DNA of 64,000 nucleotides. It comes from Oikopleura dioica. Lineage: Eukaryota; Animalia; Chordata. A program made the position numbers and the translations under genes. Shown here one piece after another: positions 14,690-47,587 of the stretch. The first letter of the stretch is position 1; each line of letters starts with the position of its first letter. The DNA is taken from assembly GCA_907165135.1 (NCBI GenBank), contig OU015566.1, positions 11,718,001-11,782,000 on the forward strand, written 5' to 3'. Below the pieces are notes generated by a model that was not told where the DNA came from, ran no database searches, and saw only the letters and a list, made by a program, of their open reading frames with translations.

Positions 14690-15848
14690 ATGAAGTCACT
14701 TAGCATTCTACCACTCGCAGTCCTAGCAGGAAAATGCCAAGAAAAGTGCAATTCCGACTTAGAGGTCTGCCTCGTTGACTGCATAACCCAATCGCCCGAG
14801 GATGTTCGCTGCCCAGGAGATTGTGCAAGAGCTGAAAGTGACTGTCTTTTCAGATGCCAGGACAGTAATTATGGCCTCTTCGCAGCTAGCGTAAGTTTTT
14901 GTTTCTAAGCGTTTCCTCAGTTCATTTGTAGAAAAACTACATGGAAGTCAACTTCGGAACAGATGTTGCTGAATATTCTTTCGACTTCGACTTTGCTGGG
15001 GTAAGAATAATTCACTAAGAAAGAACTAGAAGTTTTATTAGCACGACTTCGAAACTGCTTGCTCAGTTGAATTCGAGGGCGACTATTACATCATCGGCGG
15101 TATCAAAAACATCCAGCGAGTTTCTAAGGTATCATGGGAGTAGCAACCGTGTCCCATTCTTTTAATTTTCAGGTTTCGAACTGCGGACTGAGCCAGGTCG
15201 ATTTTATGTATCAAGCGTTCTACGGCCATCGTTGCACGAACTGGAATGGGGCTATCCATATCTGCGGATCGGAAGTTGACGCTGGCGCTTGTTGGAAATA
15301 TGTTCCAGGTTAACTTTTTCAATCATGACTCTGGAACTACCAATGTTTTAGGCCGTAGCCAGAATACCATCGCTAGAAGTCAATATGGCCACAGCGAGGG
15401 TGGGCTAGTCGTCTATGACAATTATCTTCTCCGAATCGCCGGTTACACTCAAAAAGTTGAAGCTTACGGCGAAGGCGACTCTTTCTGGTCCGATTTCAAC
15501 GCTGATTTGCCGTACGTCTTGAGTCAATTTGCAGCCCTTGTCGTAGACGATTCCATCTTCCTCTTTGGAGGATACTCCGGCGCCTCATACAGCCAAGTCG
15601 ACACAATTCTGCGCTTCGACAACAACTCAAGAAGCTGGGACCAAATTGGTCAGATGGAGTACAGCCGAAGGAATTTCGCAATCGTCCAGGAAGAAAATTT
15701 TGTTTACATTGCTGGAGGAGAAGAATTCAACCTGCCATTTGAGGTCTTTGATACAGAGACTTTCGAAACAAGTACTTTGGAAAGCATGTCGCAGAACTTC
15801 TACTACGCACAAATCATACCCGAAGAATTTTTGAACTGTCGAAGTTAG
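14690..15848 (+). CDS. Secreted protein with Cys-rich N-terminal module and kelch-like beta-propeller
   Basis: Signal MKSLSILPLAVLA; CQEKC..CLVDC..CPGDC..CLFRC module; kelch-type GG/W blades (IFLFGGY..ILRFD..W; VYIAGG) in ORF 15246..15848. Confidence 0.75.
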
Positions 15849-15878
15849 AATAAAATGAATGAGAATGTATTTAAATGA

Positions 15879-18800
15879 TCAAGTGGCAGGAAGAAGTTGG
15901 TCGATCATGAGTTCAAGCTTGTTGAATTTAGCGTCGTTATCTTCAACATGAGATGCAAGGGCCTACAAGTTTGCTATTTTCTATGAGATTTAGATTTACC
16001 GTTATTCGTCGATTTATACTCTGCATGAGGGCATCAACAGATGGTGTTTCGTCGAGACACTGTTTGTGCAGCTCTGTAACGGCCTTTTTCGTCACTTTTC
16101 CACTCGAAGTGTCCATATTGAACGCATCCTAGGAAAGCTATACCACTTTTACTTTCAACTTTCGTACCTTAGACATCGTATCTTCCTGAGTTTTGATAGT
16201 CGAGTTTAGGTACTCAATATGAATAAGCTCTGAAATTAGGTGGTAAATAATTAGTGAAGACGAGACCGCGAACCTGCTCTGTATTTATTCGGCATTTGAT
16301 AGACGGCTTCGAGGGTTTGCTTCACTTGATTTGACATTTTTTTGAATATCGCATCTTAATTTTATGAAGACCAAAATACTGATTGACAGAGTACTTGCTG
16401 AAATGAGCTTGATATCTTCGATCGCCAACGCAGCAATCAAATTGACAACAACCAACGGCATCACAATAATAAAAGAAGTGAAGATAATTATCAACGTATT
16501 TTGCGCAATGTCATCAAATGCTATAAACAAGGATGAAAATCAACAAAGAGCAATCGTACTTACATTTGCAATGATCTGTTTCTTCAGTCGCTTCTGGTCC
16601 CAACGCACTACACGGCGTCCCAAATAAATTCTCCCAAGCAAATTTTTCAACAAAAATCAAGCACGTGCTCAAATATGACTAAAAATTTTCAGATATTTCG
16701 GGGAAAAAATGAGTTTTCTTACATTGAAAAAAGTAGCGAAGCTGTCTCGATCCTGAAACATGATCACCATCAAAATCGCAGTCGCAAAAATGGACATGAA
16801 ACATAGAATCGAAAAGCTCGTGAATGTTTTCATGATTTGATTGAACATAATCACAAAGTATCCGATTCCAGGCATTTTCTGCATCTTTACGAGGAGCATC
16901 ATCCACGAAAGCCAAATTGCACAGATTCCGCAAACCCACTGCCACTGCAGAGGAGCACTACTTTCTTCGGGGTTCAAATTGATCGCAAATAGAAAGGTCA
17001 AAACAAACATGAGCATTTCTGCAAGATTGCTAGCCTTTTTCAAGAAATCGAGTCGCTGGTAGCTGATTCGTAAGAACATCACTACAAGCTTGAAAATACT
17101 ATAAATAATGAGGATCCAATCGAGCGCGCTTCGAATATTTCGCAATGAATGACAGTAGTTCATGTCATCTGGCATTTGCGACAAATGGATAGTATCGTAT
17201 TTAGCCGTTGGTAGAAGATTTCCATCATCATCTCGAGGCAAGTAATAATCGATTATCCCAACAAGGTCGATTCCATATTCATGACAGGCAATAGTTCTAT
17301 TTTGGCTGATCACATATGGTGGAGGAATCAAAAGGGCAAAGGCATTCAATAAACCAAGGTACAGCAAGTAGCCAAAAATGCTGAAGTAAAAGTAGTAAAA
17401 GCCTCCACTCTTCCACGTCTCCTGAGTCAAGGCGATCACAACTGGGTGGACAAGCAGGTCTGTCCGCTGGTGCTTGACCATCTTGAAACGGGCTCATGTA
17501 TCCCGTAATGTCGTTTGTTTTAACATTTTTCCTAAACGAATACAATCGTAGGATTTTACGATTTCCGTAACCGAAAAAGCTTATTTAAATTAACTGAGCA
17601 TTAAATATCAAGATACGAGCTGAAAGAATTGAGTTGACAAAATAAACTGTCGTCAGCGTCTATTGATCGATTCCCACGGCTGAAAAAGAGACGGATTCTA
17701 GAGCGTATCCAACTCAAAACTTGTAAGAGAAATGCCCTTAGCTAGCTGTGAATTGACTTCACTCTGCCCAAAAATGTGCAAAATCATTTGGAAAGGTAGT
17801 TTTTAGGGTTCGCAATCAAATAATTTCAAAATTTAAAATTGCTCTAAAAATAACCGTTTTCAGGATTCCCCCCTTTTCAATCATCAAGATTTCATTTCTG
17901 AAATCAGAATTTAAAAATCTTCAGTAGAACTCGAGATATGGCCCCGGAAAAAAGAACGAATTTCATCGGCGCGGGCTGCGCGCTGCGCTGTATGGGTGGC
18001 GCCCGAGTGCTGAAGCAAAGCGCCGAGTCAAACTCTGGCCCAAATCAATTTCACTTGTTCTTTTTCATTTTTTTATGATAATAAAATTAATAATTTAATA
18101 ACTTTAATTAAAAAATATTAGATAAATTAATAAAATATTTAATAATAACTTAACAAATAAAGTTAATAATAAAAATTAAAAAAAAAATAAATATAAATTA
18201 TATAAATACTCATAATTTAAATAAATTATAAAAAAAAAGCATAAATAAACAGAACTCACTCACTTTAGGAGTGTCACATTGATAAAAATAATTTTCTTGA
18301 AATCGCTTTCACGAAGAGGTACCCCGCTGTGTTTGCTTTACGATGGACGCCAGAATTTCATGCTTTGTAACATCATGTCAAACCACGTGCTCGGTCATGT
18401 GACTGGATGTCAGCTAATAACATGCGCAGCTTCATCTCAATATTGGGGATTTTCTTGAATATGTCGTCACAACTGGGTACCCTGCTGTGAATGGCTTATC
18501 ATCGTCGCCAGAATTTCACCTTCTGTCACATGATTTCGAAGCACATAATTAGTCATGTGACCAGATATCAGCTCAAAACATGCGCAGCTTCATCTCGATA
18601 TGGGGGATTTTCTTGAATATGTCGTCACGACTTGGTACCCTGCTGTGAATGGCTTATCATCGTCGCCAGAATTTCTCCTTCTATCACATGATGTCGAAGC
18701 ACACAATTAGTCATGTGACCAGATATCAGCTCAAAACATGTGCAGCTTCATCTCGATATGGGGGATTTTCTTGAAGATGTCGTCACGACTTGGTACCCTG

Positions 18801-21800
18801 CTGTGAATGGCTTATCCTCGTCGCCAGAGTTTCTCCTTTTGTCACATGATGTCGAAGCACACAATTAGTCATGTGACCAGATATCAGGTCAAAACATGTG
18901 CAGCTTCATCTCGATATGGGGGATTTTCTTGAAGATGTCGTCACGACTTGGTACCCTGCTGTGAATGGCTTATCATCGTCGCCAGAATTTCTCCTTCTGG
19001 CACATGATGTCGAATACCCACTAAGTCATGTGACCAGATATCAGCTCAAAACATGTGCAGCTTCATCTCGATATGGGGGATTTTCTTGAAGATGTCGTCA
19101 CGACTTGGTACCCTGCTGTGAATGGCTTATCCTCGTCGCCAGAGTTTCTCCTTTTGTCACATGATGTCGAAGCACACAATTAGTCATGTGACCAGATATC
19201 AGGTCAAAACATGTGCAGCTTCATCTCGATATGGGGGATTTTCTTGAAGATGTCGTCACGACTTGGTACCCTGCTGTGAATGGCTTTTCATCGTCGCCAG
19301 AATTTCTCCTTCTATCACATGATGTCGAAGCACACAATTAGTCATGTGACCAGATATCAGGTCAAAACATGTGCAGCTTCATCTCGATATGGGGGATTTT
19401 CTTGAAGATGTCGTCACGACTTGGTACCCTGCTGTGAATGGCTTATCATCGTCGCCAGAATTTCTCCTTCTGGCACATGATGTCGAATACCCACTAAGTC
19501 ATGTGACCAGATATCAGCTCAAAACATGTGCAGCTTCATCTCGATATGGGGGATTTTCTTGAAGATGTCGTCACGACTTGGTACCCTGCTGTGAATGGCT
19601 TATCCTCGTCGCCAGAGTTTCTCCTTTTGTCACATGATGTCGAAGCACACAATTAGTCATGTGACCAGATATCAGGTCAAAACATGTGCAGCTTCATCTC
19701 GATATGGGGGATTTTCTTGAAGATGTCGTCACGACTTGGTACCCTGCTGTGAATGGCTTATCATCGTCGCCAGAATTTCTCCTTCTGGCACATGATGTCG
19801 AATACCCACTAAGTCATGTGACCAGATATCAGCTCAAAACATGTGCAGCTTCATCTCGATATGGGGGATTTTCTTGAAGATGTCGTCACGACTTGGTACC
19901 CTGCTGTGAATGGCTTATCCTCGTCGCCAGAGTTTCTCCTTTTGTCACATGATGTCGAAGCACACAATTAGTCATGTGACCAGATATCAGGTCAAAACAT
20001 GTGCAGCTTCATCTCGATATGGGGGATTTTCTTGAAGATGTCGTCACGACTTGGTACCCTGCTGTGAATGGCTTATCCTCGTCGCCAGAGTTTCTCCTTT
20101 TGTCACATGATGTCAAAGCACACAATTTGTCATGTGGCCGGAAATCAGCTCAATACATGCGCAGCTTCCCCTCCACACTACTGATTTTCTTGAAGATGTC
20201 GTCATAACCGAGTTACCCCCGGATTCACCTCAACACTGACGATTTTCTCAAATATGTCGTCCTTAATGGTATCACCGATGAGAATGCCTTATAATCGACG
20301 CCCGAATTTTTCCGTTTGTCACACGAATATCGAGGAAATGTTTAGTTTTTTGACCAGATATCTTTTCTATACATGCGCAGCTTCACATTGATACTGATGA
20401 TTTTCTTTCTATGATCAACCTACCGCGCATCTTCATCATCATCAACCTCGGCGTCGTCCAACATTTCGCCGTCTAAGCGCGTTTAGATCAAATTCGAACT
20501 CATATTCACTCACCGAGATCGCCTCTGAAATCGTCCAGCTCCGGAATAGCTCGATAATCATTCTCCATTCCATCGCCGAAGAGTTCTTGTAGCGGCTCTC
20601 CAGCGCCAGATGAGTCGTTGTCAATCGCAGGCGACGAATCGCTGAATTAATGATTAATAGCTCCTTAATGATTTTCTTACTTTAGCCATTCATCTTTAGA
20701 CTCGTGCAGGTATGGGCCGTCATTGCTCAACTCCTCGAGACAATAAACAGTTTCCTTACGGATTCTCTCCGGATTTCGCAATTTTCTTGTTATGTTCGAT
20801 GTTGCTAAAGAATTGTTATTTACAAAAGCAAGAGTTTTTCGGATTACCATTTTTCGGAAAACAAAAAACTCTTATCAAACGAACAGACCCCCGGAAAATA
20901 CATGAGCGGAGCTAAATTTTTTAATACGAAATGATAAGAAATTAGAAATTACATTAGATGTGAGTAGACCATGTAGGTGACGGCTACGATCTTGCGGGTC
21001 TTGCAGTTGGAGCGATTTTTCGTCGAGAAACTCGAGAAAGTCGGATTTGATCGTTTTTTCAATTGCCGTAAGGGGCTTCCTGATACGGTTCTTACACTTT
21101 TCATTTCGTTTGATAAAATCAAAGCGATTGAACTATGAATTTTATTGAAAAAATGCAGCAAAAGATAAAATTTACCGAGGAAACATTTATCGGAAAAACA
21201 AGTTCACGATCGAATAGCGGCCCAACGAACTCGTCGGCGAAAGAGAAAACGATATTCACAATAGCCATGACTCTAAAATCTTAAAAATAAGGTCTTGAAC
21301 AAATTTTAAGGTAAAAAACGAAAAAAAAACACCAAAAAATCAATTTTTTAAAGAAAGTCCGATATTTTCACCGATAAACCGGTTAATACCGGTCATTATA
21401 TGTGGAGAAGAAAGAGGAGAAGCTACGGTTTCTAACAATATAAAAAAATAAAAATTTGGGCAGGGATTCGGGCTAAAACCGATAAATGTCCGGAAAACCG
21501 GCTTTTTCGGCGGCGTAAATATAAGCAGTCGGAAAAGGAAGAAAAATGACGTCGATTGATGTGCTGCAAGTCATAGTTTCTCTATTATTTTCTCTTTTTG
21601 GCAGCAATTCGCCTTTTTTCGTCTCGACGAGACTAAAAAGGTTGCACGTGCATGATGAGTCATACAGTACCAAAAATTTCAAAATTTTCAAAATAACGCA
21701 AAATTCAATTTATGGGCATCATTCGATAGGAAATCAAATTCTCTACAATTTTTATAATAGTAAAAGAAGATTCAACCCCTTTTTCAATGCAAAAAGGGAT

Positions 21801-24800
21801 GATTTGTCTCTTATCAGTAAAATTTCAACCTTTAAAAATTTTTCATTGTCCACATTTTTTCATTATTTTCTTTATAGATTTATACTAAGAATGTTAAGAC
21901 TCATTCATTTTTGACAAAAACAGCTAATACCTCATCAAGGTTTTCGAGATATTCGAGGTTGTCAATGTTGAACTTTTGGTGTTTCAAGCTATGATCTTGG
22001 CAATATAATAATTAATTAAAGGCTGAAGCTGCGCACGAATAGAGGCGAAATTCGGTCACATGATAGAACACATGTTCCAGAATCATGTGACAAAAGAAAA
22101 ATATCTGGCATCGACAATAAGGCTTCCACAGCAGGGTACCCAGTTGGGACAACATATTCAAGAAAATCGTCAGTATCAAGGTGAAGCTGCGCATCAATTG
22201 ACCTGATATCAACTCACATGACTCAACAGGTGTTCTCGAATCATGTGACAAAAGGAAAAGTTCTGGCATCGCTGATAACGCATTCACAGCGGAGTACTTA
22301 GTTAGGACAACGTATTCAAGTACTTCGTATGACATGTTTATGTCCGACAATATTGCTTTCTCCACAATTTTTCGACAATTTGTTATCAGATATGAATTTA
22401 TTATGCTCTTGTCTTTGTTTAAAAGATGTAAACAGCAAATACCTCATCAAAAGTTACAAGAAATTTAAAGTTGACTATGCTTAACTTATGGAACAACGGT
22501 TGAGACAATGTATTGAAGAAAATTGTCAGTATCACGGTGAAGCTGCGCATCAATTGACCTGATATCAAGTCACATGACTCAACACATGTTTTGCAATCAT
22601 GTGACAAAAAGAAAAGTTCTGGCATCGCTGATAAGGCATTCACAGCGGGGTACCCAGTAAGGACAACGTATTCGAGAAAATCGACAGTATCAAGGTGAAG
22701 CTGCGCATCAATTGACCTGATATTAAGTCACATGTCTCAACACGTGCTCCTGAATTATGTGACAAAAGAAAAATATCTGGCATCGACAATAAGGCTTCCA
22801 CAGCAGGGTAACCAGTTGGGCCCACGTATTCAAGAAAATCGTCAGTATCAAGGTGAAGCTGCGCATCAATTGACCTGATATCAAGTCACATGACTCAACA
22901 CATGTTTTGCAATCATGTGACAAAAGGAAAAGTTCTGGCATCGCTGATAAGGCATTCACAGCGGGGTACCCAGTCTGGCCAACGTATTCAAGAAAATTGT
23001 CAGTATCAAAGTGAAGCTGCGCATGTATTGACCTGATATCCGGTCACATGACTCAACACGTGTTCTGCAATCATGTGACAAAAGGAAAAGTTCTGGCATC
23101 GCTGATTAGGCATTCACAGCGGGGTACCCAGTTGGGACAACGTATTCAAGAAAATCGTCAATATCAAGGTGAAGCTGCGCATGTTTTGATCTGATACCTA
23201 GTCACATGTTTCAACACATGTTCTGCAATCATGTGACAAAAGGAAAAGTTCTGGCATCGCTGATAAGGCATTCACAGCGGAGTACCCAGTTGGAACAACG
23301 TATTCAAGAAAATCGTCAGTATCAAGGTGAAGCTGCGCATCAATTGACCTGATATCAAGTCACATGACTCAACAGGTGTTCTCAAATCATGTGACAAAAG
23401 GAACAGTTCCGGCATCTATGATAAAGCATTCACAGCGGGGTACCCAGCTGGGACAACGTATTCAAGAAAATTGTCAGTTTCAAGGGGAAGCTGCGCATAA
23501 ATTGAGCTGATATTAAGTCACATGACTCAACACATGTTTTGCAATCATGTGACAAAAAGAAAAGTTCTGGCATCGCTGATAAGGCATTCACAGCGGGGTA
23601 CCCAGTAAGGACAACGTGTTCGAGAAAATCGACAGTATCAAGGTGAAGCTGCGCATCAATTGACCTGATATTAAGTCACATGTCTCAACACGTGCTCCTG
23701 AATTATGTGACAAAAGAAAAATATCTGGCATCGACAATAAGGCTTCCACAGCAGGGAACCCAGTTGGGCCCACGTATTCAAGAAAATCGTCAGTATCAAG
23801 GTGAAGCTGCGCATCAATTGACCTGATATCCAGTCACATGACTCAACAGGTGTTATCGAATCATGTGACAAAAGGAAAAATTCTGGCATCGATGATCAGG
23901 CATTCACAGCGGGGTACTTAGTTAGGACAACGTATTCAAGTACATCGTATGACATGTTTATGTCCGACAATATTGCTTTCTCCACAATTTTTCGACAATT
24001 TGTTATCAGATATGAATTTATTATGCTCTTGTCTTTGTTTTAAAGATGTAAACAGCAAATACCTCATCAAAAATTACAAGAAATTTAAAGTTGACTATGC
24101 TTAACTTATGGAACAACGGTTGAGACAATGTATTGAAGAAAATTGTCAGTATCACGGTGAAGCTGCGCATCAATTGACCTGATATCAAGTCACATGACTC
24201 AACACATGTTTTGCAATCATGTGACAAAAGGAAAAGTTCTGGCATCGCTGATTAGGCATTCACAGCGGGGTACCCAGTCTGGCCAACGTATTCAAGAAAA
24301 TTGTCAGTATCAAAGTGAAGCTGCGCATGTATTGACCTGATATCCCGTCACATGACTCAACACGTGTTCTGCAATCATGTGACAAAAGGAAAAGTTCTGG
24401 CATCGCTGATTAGGCATTCACAGCGGGGTACCCAGTTGGGACAACGTATTCAAGAAAATCGTCAATATCAAGGTGAAGCTGCGCATGTTTTGATCTGATA
24501 CCTAGTCACATGTTTCAACACATGTTCTGCAATCATGTGACAAAAGGAAAAGTTCTGGCATCGCTGATAAGGCATTCACAGCGGGGTACCCAGTCTGGCC
24601 AACGTATTCAAGAAAATTGTCAGTATCAAAGTGAAGCTGCGCATGTATTGACCTGATATCCCGTCACATGACTCAACACGTGTTCTGCAATCATGTGACA
24701 AAAGGAAAAGTTCTGGCATCGCTGATTAGGCATTCACAGCGGGGTACCCAGTTGGGACAACGTATTCAAGAAAATCGTCAATATCAAGGTGAAGCTGCGC

Positions 24801-27800
24801 ATGTTTTGATCTGATACCTAGTCACATGTTTCAACACATGTTCTGCAATCATGTGACAAAAGGAAAAGTTCTGGCATCGCTGATAAGGCATTCACAGCGG
24901 AGTACCCAGTTGGAACAACGTATTCAAGAAAATCGTCAGTATCAAGGTGAAGCTGCGCATCAATTGACCTGATATCAAGTCACATGACTCAACAGGTGTT
25001 CTCAAATCATGTGACAAAAGGAACAGTTCCGGCATCTATGATAAAGCATTCACAGCGGGGTACCCAGCTGGGACAACGTATTCAAGAAAATTGTCAGTTT
25101 CAAGGGGAAGCTGCGCATAAATTGAGCTGATCTTCGGTCACATGACTTGACATGTGATCCGAAATTATATTATAATGGGAGAAATTATGGCTTTGATGAT
25201 AAGGCATTCTCAGCGGGGTACCCAGCTGTTACTACTTAATCAAGAAAATTATCGATAACAAAGTCAAGTCTTATGTGTCTTATGTGTCGTGCTCACATCC
25301 TTTTATATGAATAAATACATAGTGTGATATTTTTGAAAAGAGAGAAATAGTTCTTATTATTATTGGTTTATATATGCATGTATCGTGATTTTTTCTGCTG
25401 ATTCGACAAATTTTTTAATGATAAGTATTATGTCATCATTAAATTTTCCATTGTTTGATATTTTTATAGCCGTTTGTTTTATTATTATTCTGTTTGTACA
25501 GATAAGAAATCTTCTTTGTTCAGCATATTTCATATTTTGAATTTCGCGCACTTTTTTTTTTCTAAACAATAATTTTTTAATTTCCAAGTACGATCCACCA
25601 ACCATTCCAAATCGCTTGAATTTTTGACAGGAGGGTTATTTTGCCTGTATAAATGTATGGTCGAGGTTGCGAAATCGTAGAACACCTGTGAGCAGAGATA
25701 TTGATTATTTTCCGGAATTTCTAGCTCATAATTTGTTTGTTTGTTTATTTTTCTCATTTTTTTTCGATTTTTTAGATTCCCTTATACCGATTTACTATAC
25801 TAAAATTCAATTTTATTGTTATTCAAGATGGTCAAAATTATTTGATTGCGAACCCTAGTAGTTTTACGATGAAACAATTCGCCAAAAACACAGTATTCAG
25901 AGGTTGTTGACATGGGTGACTGTGCGAATCTAACGCAATTTCAAATCAACGAATATGAAGAAAGATGGGATTCAGGCGGTTGTCATGAAATGGTACAATA
26001 GCATCATAAATTTATCTGTTATTATATTATCAATTTTAGTACTTATGCAACAACTCTCAAATCGTCAGGGCATCAGTGATATTTTTCCTTTTGTTCATTT
26101 TACTGTGTAAATAAATGAGAGTCTGGTTACGAGACTGTCAATTTGACAGTGTCGAATATAAAAGCTCTAAAATCTCGTTGTTACGTTAATTCATTGTCAC
26201 TCTTTTACGACTCTTTAATCGACTCGCCTTAGAGTCTAAGACGGCTTAATTGAATAAAGAAAGAAAAACTTGCAGAGATATAACTTGAAAATGGTCTGTA
26301 CAAATCCAATGGCATGTCCCAAAATGTGCAAAATTTTGACAAAAGGTATTATATACGCAAATAATATATAGACTAAGAGCATAGTAAGTATAGTAAATGT
26401 GTTTTAGAGATCGAAGATCTTGGGGGATGTGGCGCATTGACGCCAGAGCAATCGAATACTTACGCAACTAAATGGAAAATTGGTGGTTGCAAGGAATTGG
26501 TATTTGAGATTGATAAATGCTTATTTTATGGTTTTTTAGAGCTTTTGTAGTGGTTCGGAAATCGTTGGTATTTCAGTTTTGTTGTGTCTTATTCTATTTT
26601 TTCTGTATAAATAAAAGTCATGAGCCCTTGTCAAAATGAGCGGATTATTCGTATATAAGACTTTTGAGTTCTCGCTGTACGGCCTGACTGTAATGACAAT
26701 CTCCGAGGTATAATTCGGCTGAAGAATAACATCCATCAAGCTCGCCGAGTTATTTTCCGCATTTTTTCTTACTCCCGCGTTGAACCATTTCAAAATTCGG
26801 TAGTCGTCGCTGATCCAGGACACTTTGCATTGAATCTCGAGCTCTTTGACATCCAGATCTTGGCGAGCACATTTGGCAAATTCGACGCCTCGGACTTTCA
26901 TGCAGCGATTGAGTACCATTAACGCTTCGTCTGGCATCACTTCGATAAGTTTTCGGAAAGGAGTTGTAAATGGCTTTGGCGAGATTTTCGACCGATTATT
27001 TTTCTTGATTCAAAAAGCAGAAAAAACTCGATCCTTTGATGGAATTGCCGTTCTGACCGCATTGCAAAGTACCGATTCCCAGTGATCTGTTTGAATAAGC
27101 AGCTGAACAATATCAGGCTGTTGACCATCAATTGCATAGTCTAGGCAATTTCTTCCGTTGTCGTCTCGCTGATTGATAGACTCGTACCATTTCAGGATAA
27201 ATTTGACCACTGGAACTTGACCTCCTCTACAAGCGTGCATCAAAAGAGTGACTTTGTGCGCATCAGGTTTCTGAATAATCTGCTTGAATTCCGTTTCTCC
27301 CGCGTGTTTCTCGATGTATTGGACGAACCGGAACCAGAAATCTACGGCTTCGTCTTTTCTGTCTTTGACTGTCACGTTTCTCAGGAGTGCGAAAAGAAGG
27401 GTTCTCCCATTTTCCTTCAGCGTAAATTTGAAATCAAGTTCTTTGAGTCGCCAATGATAGTTTTTCAGCACATCGGTCGCAAAGTACCACATGATTCGCC
27501 AAAGAACAGCCTCCATTTGTAACGATTTATCCTGCACTTGGACATGTTTGATGATGTCTTTGAAAAGTTCCAAGTCTGTGTTGCGCCCACGAGCGTGAAT
27601 GAAGAATTCTAGTGTGTTCATCATCGCAAATCGCTCATCCTTGATTTCAACTCTTCGGACAAGATTAGATTTCGCAAGCATGGTTCGGATGAGAGTCTTT
27701 ACTTTGAAACTATTTTTGAAGTGTTCTTCGATCGGCCCGATTTTATTCTCGAATCGGATCTGAAAAATGATCATTAGTAATGATTCAATACAGTCTGACA

Positions 27801-28283
27801 AACACATGATTTTTTACCTCATGACTGTTGATAAGATAAAGAATTGGGGTCCAACCATCTTGGTCTTGAACATCAAATCCAAATTTTTCTCCGAGAGCAA
27901 GAAGAACCTCATCCAGATTGAGATTAACGATGCAGAAATGAAATAAAGTCATCGCTTGACGATTTTGAGAAGGAAGAGACACCAAATGAAGCTGTTTTAT
28001 TGTTGGAATAACTTGAAAATAACTTGAATCCAAAATAAGATGGTACAAAATGCTAACCTTGTGTCATTGTTTGAATTTGAAGCCGCGTTACAACTCCGTT
28101 TTCAGTTCTCATTACTTCTTTCAGCATAAGCCAGAAAGCATACTCGTTCGGATACATTTTCTCCATCTCTTTTAGTGAAAGAACCGGCCGATAGCCAGGA
28201 CGTATTCCATCGTAGACATTTTGCCTCGGTCGATTTCCAACGGAATGCGCTCCGAGATAACCAGGAGCAGAAGACCCGCTCAT
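15879..28283 (-). CDS. TRPA-like ankyrin-repeat cation channel with a ~9.2-kb intron (approx. 17482-26661)
   Basis: Ankyrin repeats (TLLMHACRGGQ..GRNCLDYAIDGQQ) in 27010..27807. Linker TPFRKLIEVMPDEALMVLNRCM resembles TRPA1. MVKHQRTDLLVHP..TWKSGG pre-S1 and S1-S5 lie in 16669..17481, S6 (MPLVVVNLIAALA) in 16285..16530, then a C-terminal coil. Confidence 0.85.
18270..20405 (+). repeat. Tandem satellite array 1, ~157-158-bp monomer, ~13 copies, partly dimeric (315-bp period)
   Basis: The same small ORF recurs at 18898, 19371, 19686 and 20001 (spacings 473, 315, 315). Monomers carry GGTACCC(T/C)GCTGTGAATG and inverted GTCACATGA/TCATGTGAC. Confidence 0.95.
20424..20641 (-). pseudogene. MCM2: Captured MCM2 N-terminal (histone-binding domain) fragment; two exons, 41-bp intron
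   Basis: Spliced translation [59 protein letters not shown] matches the MCM2 motif [22 protein letters not shown]. Exons 20514-20641 and 20424-20472; GT-AG intron 20473-20513. No MCM ATPase exons follow. Confidence 0.85.
22020..25260 (-). repeat. Tandem satellite array 2: same ~158-bp family, inverted orientation, diverged subfamily, with a ~1.62-kb higher-order duplication
   Basis: The reverse complement aligns with array 1 monomers (GTCATGTGAC..GCGCAGCTTCAC..ATTTTCTTGAA..GGTACCCCGCTGTGAATG). A ~200-bp non-monomer insert occurs twice (~22320-22510 and ~23940-24130). Confidence 0.95.
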
Positions 28284-35891: not shown

Positions 35892-36160
35892 TTTTTGCGA
35901 AATTAGCATTGAGAGCGAAGCTTGCCTGGCAGCAGCATTTCGAGTACGGCTGATTCCATGTAAAAGCGCGATCCATGTAAAAACTAAAGCATGTAAAAAT
36001 CGATTCCATGTAAAAACATTCTTTTACATGGATTGCATCTTTACATGGTTTCAACCGGACAAAAAAAGCTGAATTCATGTAAAAGTAATTTTTCTGAAAA
36101 AATAAATGAAACCATGTAAAATTTGTGAAAAAGATGGAATTCATGTAAATTTATTTTTTT
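35892..36160. repeat. 51-bp segment (inverted copy at 47342-47392) followed by a CATGTAAAA-motif cluster with orientation switches
   Basis: About nine CATGTAAA/TTTACATG motifs. The first 51 bp are the exact reverse complement of 47342-47392. Confidence 0.8.
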
Positions 36161-45450: not shown

Positions 45451-45570
45451 GCTTAGCGTCATACCGCGTAGAATAAACCAGTTCTCGTCCGATCACTGAA
45501 GTCAAACTACGACGGGCGGGGTTAGTACTTACATGGGTGACCGGTTGGGAATACCTCGTGCGCTAAGCAT
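45451..45570 (+). rRNA. 5S rRNA
   Basis: 120 nt with complementary ends (GCTTAGCG..CGCTAAGC) and conserved CATACC, TCTCGTCCGATC, GAAG, GGTTAGTACT, TGGGAATAC motifs. Upstream TATATAA at 45421; T-run terminator. Confidence 0.95.
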
Positions 45571-46766: not shown

Positions 46767-46886
46767 ATGCTTAGCGCACGAGGTATTCCCAACCGGTCAC
46801 CCATGTAAGTACTAACCCCGCCCGTCGTAGTTTGACTTCAGTGATCGGACGAGAACTGGTTTATTCTACGCGGTATGACGCTAAGC
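46767..46886 (-). rRNA. 5S rRNA (mirror arm)
   Basis: Reverse complement of 45451-45570. Confidence 0.95.
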
Positions 46887-47211: not shown

Positions 47212-47587
47212 AAAGGATACGGATGCTTGATTTCGAGGCCGTTTTGTCGCTGCACGCTCCTATTTACGGCATTTTTTCAGAAAAGCGCGCAATAGACTAT
47301 TGCCAATAGTCTACTGCAAATAGAGGGCGCATTTTCTCAGCCGAAATGCTGCTGCCAGGCAAGCTTCGCTCTCAATGCTAATTTCGCAAAAATCGTGATT
47401 CTTTCGATTACTGATAGTAGTTAACGAGTTATCTCATGTGAAAATCTTCTTCTTACATTATGTACTAATAAAATGAGCAACAAAACAGATCTGATGGTAA
47501 AAATCGCTACGCATCAGGCTCGTTGTGAGTTCCTGTTAAAATTTATTCGTGAACTGTGGCAGTGGAAAAGTGAACAAAATAATTTAT

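Follow-up and report, generated by a model that had tools for sequence, protein, structure and literature searches.

A 64-kb stretch of the genome of Oikopleura dioica (Okinawan lineage), referred to below as the window, contains an 8,054 bp element, inserted in an intron of a TRPA1-like gene on the minus strand, that is probably a non-autonomous hAT-superfamily transposon; its interior resembles that of a foldback element and includes a presumably captured passenger gene fragment. The hallmarks of the hAT superfamily are an 8-bp target site duplication (TSD), a short terminal inverted repeat (TIR) of roughly 10-25 bp that starts with YARNG, and a weak target consensus, nTnnnnAn; autonomous members encode a transposase with a BED finger, a DDE core and a hAT dimerisation domain. 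The element was assigned to this superfamily because it has an exact 8-bp TSD and a short TIR starting with TAGGG, which conforms to YARNG, and because it encodes no transposase. The original prediction, made from the letters of the window, had likewise described a non-autonomous element of hAT type, and the analysis of its ends and coding content leads to the same classification.

The left TIR, TAGGGTTCGCAATCAAATAATTT, occupies positions 17804-17826 on the plus strand and the right TIR, at 25835-25857 on the minus strand, is identical to it at 23 of 23 positions. The two copies of the TSD, GTAGTTTT, lie directly outside the TIRs at 17796-17803 and 25858-25865, and the duplication is exactly 8 bp long because the adjoining base differs on each side. 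When up to three mismatches were permitted, TAGGGTTCGCAATCAAATAATTT matched the window at just these two places, where the number expected by chance is zero. The full window was also scanned for YARNG ends that combine a TIR of 9 bp or longer with an 8-bp TSD free of mismatches, and the pair that bounds the element was the only one found. The predicted perfect 23-bp TIRs and 8-bp TSD were thus recovered as the sole qualifying pair, and the predicted AT-rich block inside each end is reflected in a GC content of 0.29 at 17800-18199 and 0.285 at 25400-25799.

Between the TIRs and the repeat arrays lie two subterminal unique regions. The left one (17827-18287, plus strand) includes a GC-rich island at about 17935-18050 followed by an AT-rich block at about 18060-18240, while the right one (25253-25834, minus strand) is AT-rich, as judged by the GC profile. 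Beyond the 23-bp tips, the left 460-bp and right 580-bp regions are unrelated to each other; the possibility that they represent a diverged long TIR was rejected, since the local alignment score was no better than that of shuffled sequences. The GC-rich island was also considered as a small RNA gene, and this too was rejected, as the island matched nothing in Rfam, contained no tRNA and showed no excess in its folding energy. None of the element's sequence is repeated in the rest of the window.

The longest open reading frame (ORF) in the element codes for 122 amino acids. Seven pieces of the element were scanned against Pfam, consisting of the exon discussed below that encodes part of the MCM2 histone-binding domain (HBD), four other central pieces and two subterminal ORFs. 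No Pfam family was found in the four other central pieces, in the left-subterminal ORF of 46 residues or in the right-subterminal ORF of 81 residues, and the only match was that of the MCM2_N family to the HBD exon. The predicted absence of a transposase is in agreement with these results. Exact look-ups of three of the element's ORFs gave no match.

Comparison of the host gene with that of a related lineage provides evidence of an insertion. The host exon downstream of the insertion (16672-17481, minus strand) encodes the transmembrane part of a TRPA1-like channel and matched TRPA1 in the PDB with an E value of 1.2e-7. The exons upstream of the insertion, also on the minus strand, are located at 26539-26940 and at 27013-27807, the latter being an ankyrin-repeat exon (Ank_2, E = 2e-10). 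A protein search with the downstream host exon retrieved L002, a contig of 8.3 kb from a marine metagenome, which belongs to a related lineage of Oikopleura (85% amino acid identity and 71-84% nucleotide identity). This contig is collinear with the window across several host exons, including those on both sides of the insertion, and across a neighbouring Kelch-type gene. The flanking exons are separated by about 540 bp in L002 and by 8,975 bp in the window (17497-26472), or 913 bp once the element is subtracted, and no similarity to any part of the element was found in L002. The difference between the two spacings indicates that the element is an insertion.

Most of the interior is made up of two arrays of a 158-bp repeat, the period being the same in both arms according to Tandem Repeats Finder and a second repeat tool. 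Repeat finding and monomer comparison placed the left array at 18288-20240 on the plus strand, with 13 monomers (18290-20240) organised as a three-monomer higher-order repeat. It is followed at 20241-20419, on the same strand, by a degenerate monomer and a stub of about 20 bp from one further monomer; this stub adjoins the MCM2-like exon at its 3' end. The right array (22011-25252, minus strand), delimited in the same way, has about 20 monomers and is inverted with respect to the left one. Monomer comparison divides it into three super-units on the minus strand, 22011-22319, 22320-23948 and 23949-25252. The second and third super-units open with a piece of 110-175 bp (22320-22498 and 23949-24123), and these opening pieces are diverged copies of the right edge of the middle segment, at about 21860-22000. 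The window contains exactly two copies of the 13-mer ATAATTTTCTTGA, one at 18288-18300 (plus strand) and the other at 25240-25252 (minus strand). Since it occurs once at the outer edge of each array and on opposite strands, both arrays begin in the same monomer register. Two oppositely oriented arrays of about 158 bp starting in a common register had been anticipated, and both parts of that description hold.

The monomers were cut at a conserved anchor and compared in an identity matrix. Within the left arm, monomers are 92-100% identical and several are 100% identical, while those of the right arm share 81-100% identity, monomers R02-R07 being 99-100% identical to R12-R17. Between the arms the identity is 65-80% and the two consensus sequences are 77% identical. 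The most diverged monomer in each arm is the outermost. The presence of 100% identical higher-order copies within arms, set against 77% identity between the consensus sequences, indicates that each arm has grown and been homogenised separately; judging from the monomers, the inverted arrangement is far older than the most recent duplications in the arms. Conservation within the monomer is blocky. A 9-bp dyad, GTCACATGA-N19-TCATGTGAC, is exact in 16 monomers across both arms (18525-25015), despite the 23% divergence between them, and is a candidate protein-binding or cruciform site; its centre in the right arm often contains a CACGTG or CACATG E-box-like core. Arrays of the 158-bp family were not found outside the element in the window. 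The conserved block of the monomer had no match when scanned against viral contigs, and a profile built from nine translations of satellite ORFs had none among 5.8 billion proteins.

The array boundaries define a unique middle segment of 1.6 kb between the arms (20420-22010), in which an exon pair on the minus strand bears the MCM2 motif GDGMENDYRAIPELDDF. The exon carrying the first half of the HBD (20514-20641, minus strand) encodes DSSPAIDNDSSGAGEPLQELFGDGMENDYRAIPELDDFRGDL and reads ...GEPLQELFGDGMENDYRAIPELDDFRGDL. It is followed by a 41-nt GT..AG intron (GTGAGT...TTAG; 20473-20513, minus strand), which lies inside the HBD and keeps the frame, and by the last coding exon (20420-20472, minus strand), which ends in ..DGEMLDDAEVDDDEDAR and the stop codon TAG at 20422-20420 and extends the acidic part of the domain. 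On its own, the last coding exon had no significant match in the PDB. On the other side, a 39-nt GT..AG intron (20642-20680, minus strand) joins the HBD exon in frame to an upstream exon or ORF, MVIRK...DEWL (20681-20850, minus strand). Two further exons are predicted at 21268-21176 and 21132-20970 (together spanning 20970-21268, minus strand), separated by a 43-nt GT..AG intron, and the part of the middle segment upstream of this candidate gene (21269-22010) includes the right edge that recurs in diverged form in the right arm. The conceptual product of three exons is an acidic protein of 116 residues, which becomes 186 residues if the two additional exons are joined through the 43-nt intron and one of 165 nt. 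The median intron length in the O. dioica genome is 49 bp (PMC8008620), so the 39- and 41-nt introns are consistent with those of the genome.

Among the candidate exons, homology supports the HBD exon alone. The domain corresponds to human MCM2 residues ~61-130 and is represented in the PDB by 5bnv and 4uuz. Against the PDB, the HBD exon matched these MCM2 HBD chains, 5bnv with an E value of 4.3e-6 and 4uuz with 8e-6, and full-length MCM2 chains more weakly, while the match to Pfam MCM2_N had an E value of 0.002 and a score of 18.8 bits, under the 23.6-bit cut-off. The exon resembles the human domain in having the core GDGME-DYRAIPELD, with 14 of 17 core residues the same and the equivalent of Y81 retained, followed by an acidic stretch; it differs in that the equivalent of Y90 is F, in that only the first half of the domain is present and in that no MCM helicase body follows. 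The aligned portion, residues 18-42 of the query against 8-32 of the 70-residue HBD chain, falls short of the complete domain, which comprises an H3-contacting and an H4-contacting half. A central MCM2 HBD had been predicted, and this stands in so far as an MCM2-type motif is encoded; what the exon contains is the first half of the domain with the substitution at the Y90 equivalent.

The upstream exons had no relatives in Pfam, the PDB or protein databases, and no candidates were obtained for a 57-residue upstream ORF. The proposal that the upstream candidate exons derive from RSL24D1 was rejected, since there was no PDB or Pfam match to RSL24D1 or Rlp24. A HMMER search with a 46-residue piece of the HBD against 1.8 billion representative sequences returned three low-complexity repeat proteins only (P0003-P0005), which were considered spurious.

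The reading frame closes about 17 residues past the 41-nt intron and the stop codon is about 20 bp from the truncated monomer, so that the MCM2 homology halts where the repeat array starts. Such an apparent break, at the edge of the array, is what a captured fragment typically shows. The retained introns argue that the MCM2 piece is a gene fragment copied at the DNA level rather than a retrocopy. Its most probable status is that of a passenger acquired by transduplication, not a working part of the element. The piece is possibly transcribed and would then encode a chimeric acidic protein of small size, 116 or 186 residues long. The candidate cargo exons are on the same strand as the host gene, and exonisation into TRPA1-like transcripts is possible.

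Several observations weigh against the classification of the element as a hAT transposon with a captured gene fragment. The TSD fits the nTnnnnAn consensus at position 2, which is T, and departs from it at position 7, which is T instead of A; this is a single site, however, and the consensus is weak. Neither a further copy nor an autonomous partner sharing the TIRs was found in collections that barely contain the Okinawan lineage, and because so few sequences of that lineage are represented, the failed searches are not evidence that the element is single copy. When a 20-mer of the TIR was compared with JGI metagenome contigs, a single match was obtained (L001), which was dismissed as chance since it fell within an unrelated, coding-looking stretch that had no second end. 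The empty TRPA intron that the original prediction had proposed to look for was obtained to the extent that the relative represented by L002 lacks the element; the exact empty site could not be aligned, as the L002 intron is too diverged at the point of insertion. The capture of the MCM2 fragment is inferred from the fragment itself. Moreover, exons and splice sites of the HBD piece have stayed intact, in contrast to the 23-32% divergence of the arms and of the duplicated pieces of the centre edge, which would mean either a recent capture, later than the divergence of the arms, or selection on the gene.

The architecture has precedents. Foldback transposons have arms of tandem repeats, a variable middle domain and TSDs of 8-10 bp (PMC4079207), and separate lineages of transposons may have acquired the foldback structure independently of one another (Dias et al. 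2014, PMC4079207). One of them, Tetris, has 220-bp repeats, TSDs of 8-10 bp and no ORF (PMC4079207). The element shares with Tetris and the Drosophila foldback (FB) elements its non-autonomous nature, a unique flank followed by inverted tandem repeats, which are 150-220 bp long in this group, a variable middle domain, here the segment between the arms, a TSD in the 8-10 bp range and a repeat number that shifts by local duplication (PMC4079207). In Tetris and FB, however, the whole arm is inverted, including the flanking domain, and the elements have been assigned to Mutator; here, the match is confined to the 23-bp tips, with no relationship between the subterminal stretches of 460-580 bp and a similarity of only about 77% between the arms; the ends conform to hAT, and the middle domain contains a spliced coding fragment. 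The original prediction used the term foldback; the tandem arrays are indeed inverted, but the arms do not make a clean foldback, being 65-80% identical and separated from the TIRs by unrelated sequence. The accompanying remark that no described element of such an architecture was known is not upheld, given Drosophila FB and Tetris (PMC4079207).

The element can also be compared with two other groups. Like Ds-type non-autonomous hAT elements and hAT MITEs (miniature inverted-repeat transposable elements), it has an 8-bp TSD and a short YARNG TIR, lacks a transposase and needs one supplied in trans. It is far larger than hAT MITEs, at 8 kb, and unlike Ds-type elements, its interior consists of repeat arrays and an unrelated gene fragment, not a deleted transposase gene. 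With Pack-MULEs (MULE, Mutator-like element) and the Helitrons, CACTA and hAT elements that carry gene fragments, it shares an intron-bearing gene fragment between transposon ends and a possible chimeric frame. It differs from these transduplicating elements in being known from one copy and in having its cargo at the junction of two inverted satellite arrays. On this reading the element belongs with known kinds, as a non-autonomous hAT with a foldback-type build and a gene-fragment cargo.

Other explanations were considered. The element may belong to another superfamily with a TSD of about 8 bp, such as Mutator/Foldback, P or Merlin, and be mobilised by the corresponding transposase. Most of the foldback elements described so far have been assigned to Mutator and have 8-10 bp TSDs (PMC4079207), and there is a MULE-like element within the same window. 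However, the TIRs of that element are about 52 bp long and quite different, TAGGG at the termini conforms to YARNG and the TSD measures exactly 8 bp, all of which make a different superfamily improbable. Even less probable is that the ends are real and the interior is partly an assembly artefact produced by collapsed or misjoined arrays. Inverted arrays and higher-order copies that are 100% identical are difficult to assemble, but diagnostic variants and ordered junctions are specific to each arm, the matching TIRs and TSDs at both ends argue for one contiguous insertion, and an 8-kb structure is well under the typical length of the long reads from the genome project; 99% of the Nanopore reads fell below 42.8 kb, implying that many of them reached tens of kb (PMC8008620).

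A further alternative concerns the cargo, which would be functional if the small acidic protein of 116-186 residues were made and its MCM2-type motif bound H3-H4. Such a protein might act as a decoy that disturbs the recycling of parental histones and so weakens the silencing of the element, or it might aid chromatinisation of the arms. The frame is open through three to five exons with canonical short introns, and the HBD core, including the Y81 equivalent, is very well conserved despite the 23-32% divergence elsewhere in the element. In mouse embryonic stem cells, loss of histone binding by MCM2 results in loss of H3K9me3 and derepression of repeats (PMC10484787). On the other hand, the HBD is represented by one half only, the frame terminates where the repeat array begins, searches of Pfam, the PDB and protein databases gave no homologue for the upstream exons, and recent capture would explain the intact frame equally well. 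On balance, a functional cargo is unlikely. More specifically, it is very doubtful that the element expresses a miniature H3-H4 binder derived from MCM2 which serves as a decoy against the replication-coupled inheritance of silent chromatin or as a histone loader for the element's own arms. A transposon-borne histone decoy is conceivable, with a probability that ranges from slight to low. The earlier suggestion that histones are packaged, recycled or positioned on the element by the element itself is unsupported, 158 bp being an ordinary length for a satellite monomer, and nothing supports a joint action of the 158-bp arms and the HBD on histones.

If the element is a hAT transposon, as favoured here, a hAT transposase encoded at another locus of the genome would recognise the 23-bp ends (TAGGG...) by binding and excise the element, and reinsertion by an 8-bp staggered cut would leave the GTAGTTTT duplication. 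The interior that would be carried along consists of two opposed arrays of one 158-bp family around the 1.6-kb middle segment. Each arm grows and is homogenised separately, by unequal exchange or segmental duplication, and an oligomeric hAT transposase could find a series of subterminal sites to bind in the symmetric arrays. The middle segment would carry an intron-containing DNA copy of the 5' part of a gene, ending in the first half of the MCM2 HBD, that was presumably cut off on meeting the repeat array.

The surroundings of the element have several features of their own. Two copies of the motif TTTTGCACATTTTNGGG, each set in about 35 bp of similar context, flank the element within the host intron, at 17767-17783 and 26317-26333 (both on the minus strand), and the left copy begins right at the TSD. 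The same motif is found once in the orthologous intron of L002 (2426-2442, plus strand), despite the fact that the intron is otherwise unalignable, and it may be a conserved intronic regulatory element that was locally duplicated. The neighbouring Kelch/beta-propeller gene is conserved and collinear (L002 4525-4998; window ~15250-15850), indicating that the gene order around the insertion is ancestral. Elsewhere in the window, perfect inverted repeats of about 52 bp, TTTTTGCGAAATTAGCATTGAGAGCG..., at ~35893-35945 and ~47343-47395 bound the MULE-like element and are unrelated to the TIRs studied here. Two 5S rRNA genes in inverted orientation, at 45451-45569 (plus strand) and 46768-46886 (minus strand), scored 97 bits each against Rfam. 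This pair matches the inverted-repeat cassettes of spliced-leader (SL) and 5S genes described for Oikopleura (PMC8008620).

The importance of the MCM2 fragment depends on its being expressed and binding histones. If that were true, a transposon-borne MCM2 decoy would be a new anti-silencing strategy and a transposon-encoded mimic of a histone chaperone, although nothing found here shows that it occurs. The element itself is an apparently young DNA transposon, large and non-autonomous, in an animal genome that ranks among the most compact, and a single intron has swollen from less than 1 kb to 9 kb where introns have a median length of 49 bp (PMC8008620). In a genome for which a centromeric satellite is yet to be identified (PMC8008620), the element shows satellite-type arrays arising and being homogenised within mobile DNA, which bears on the origin of tandem repeats.

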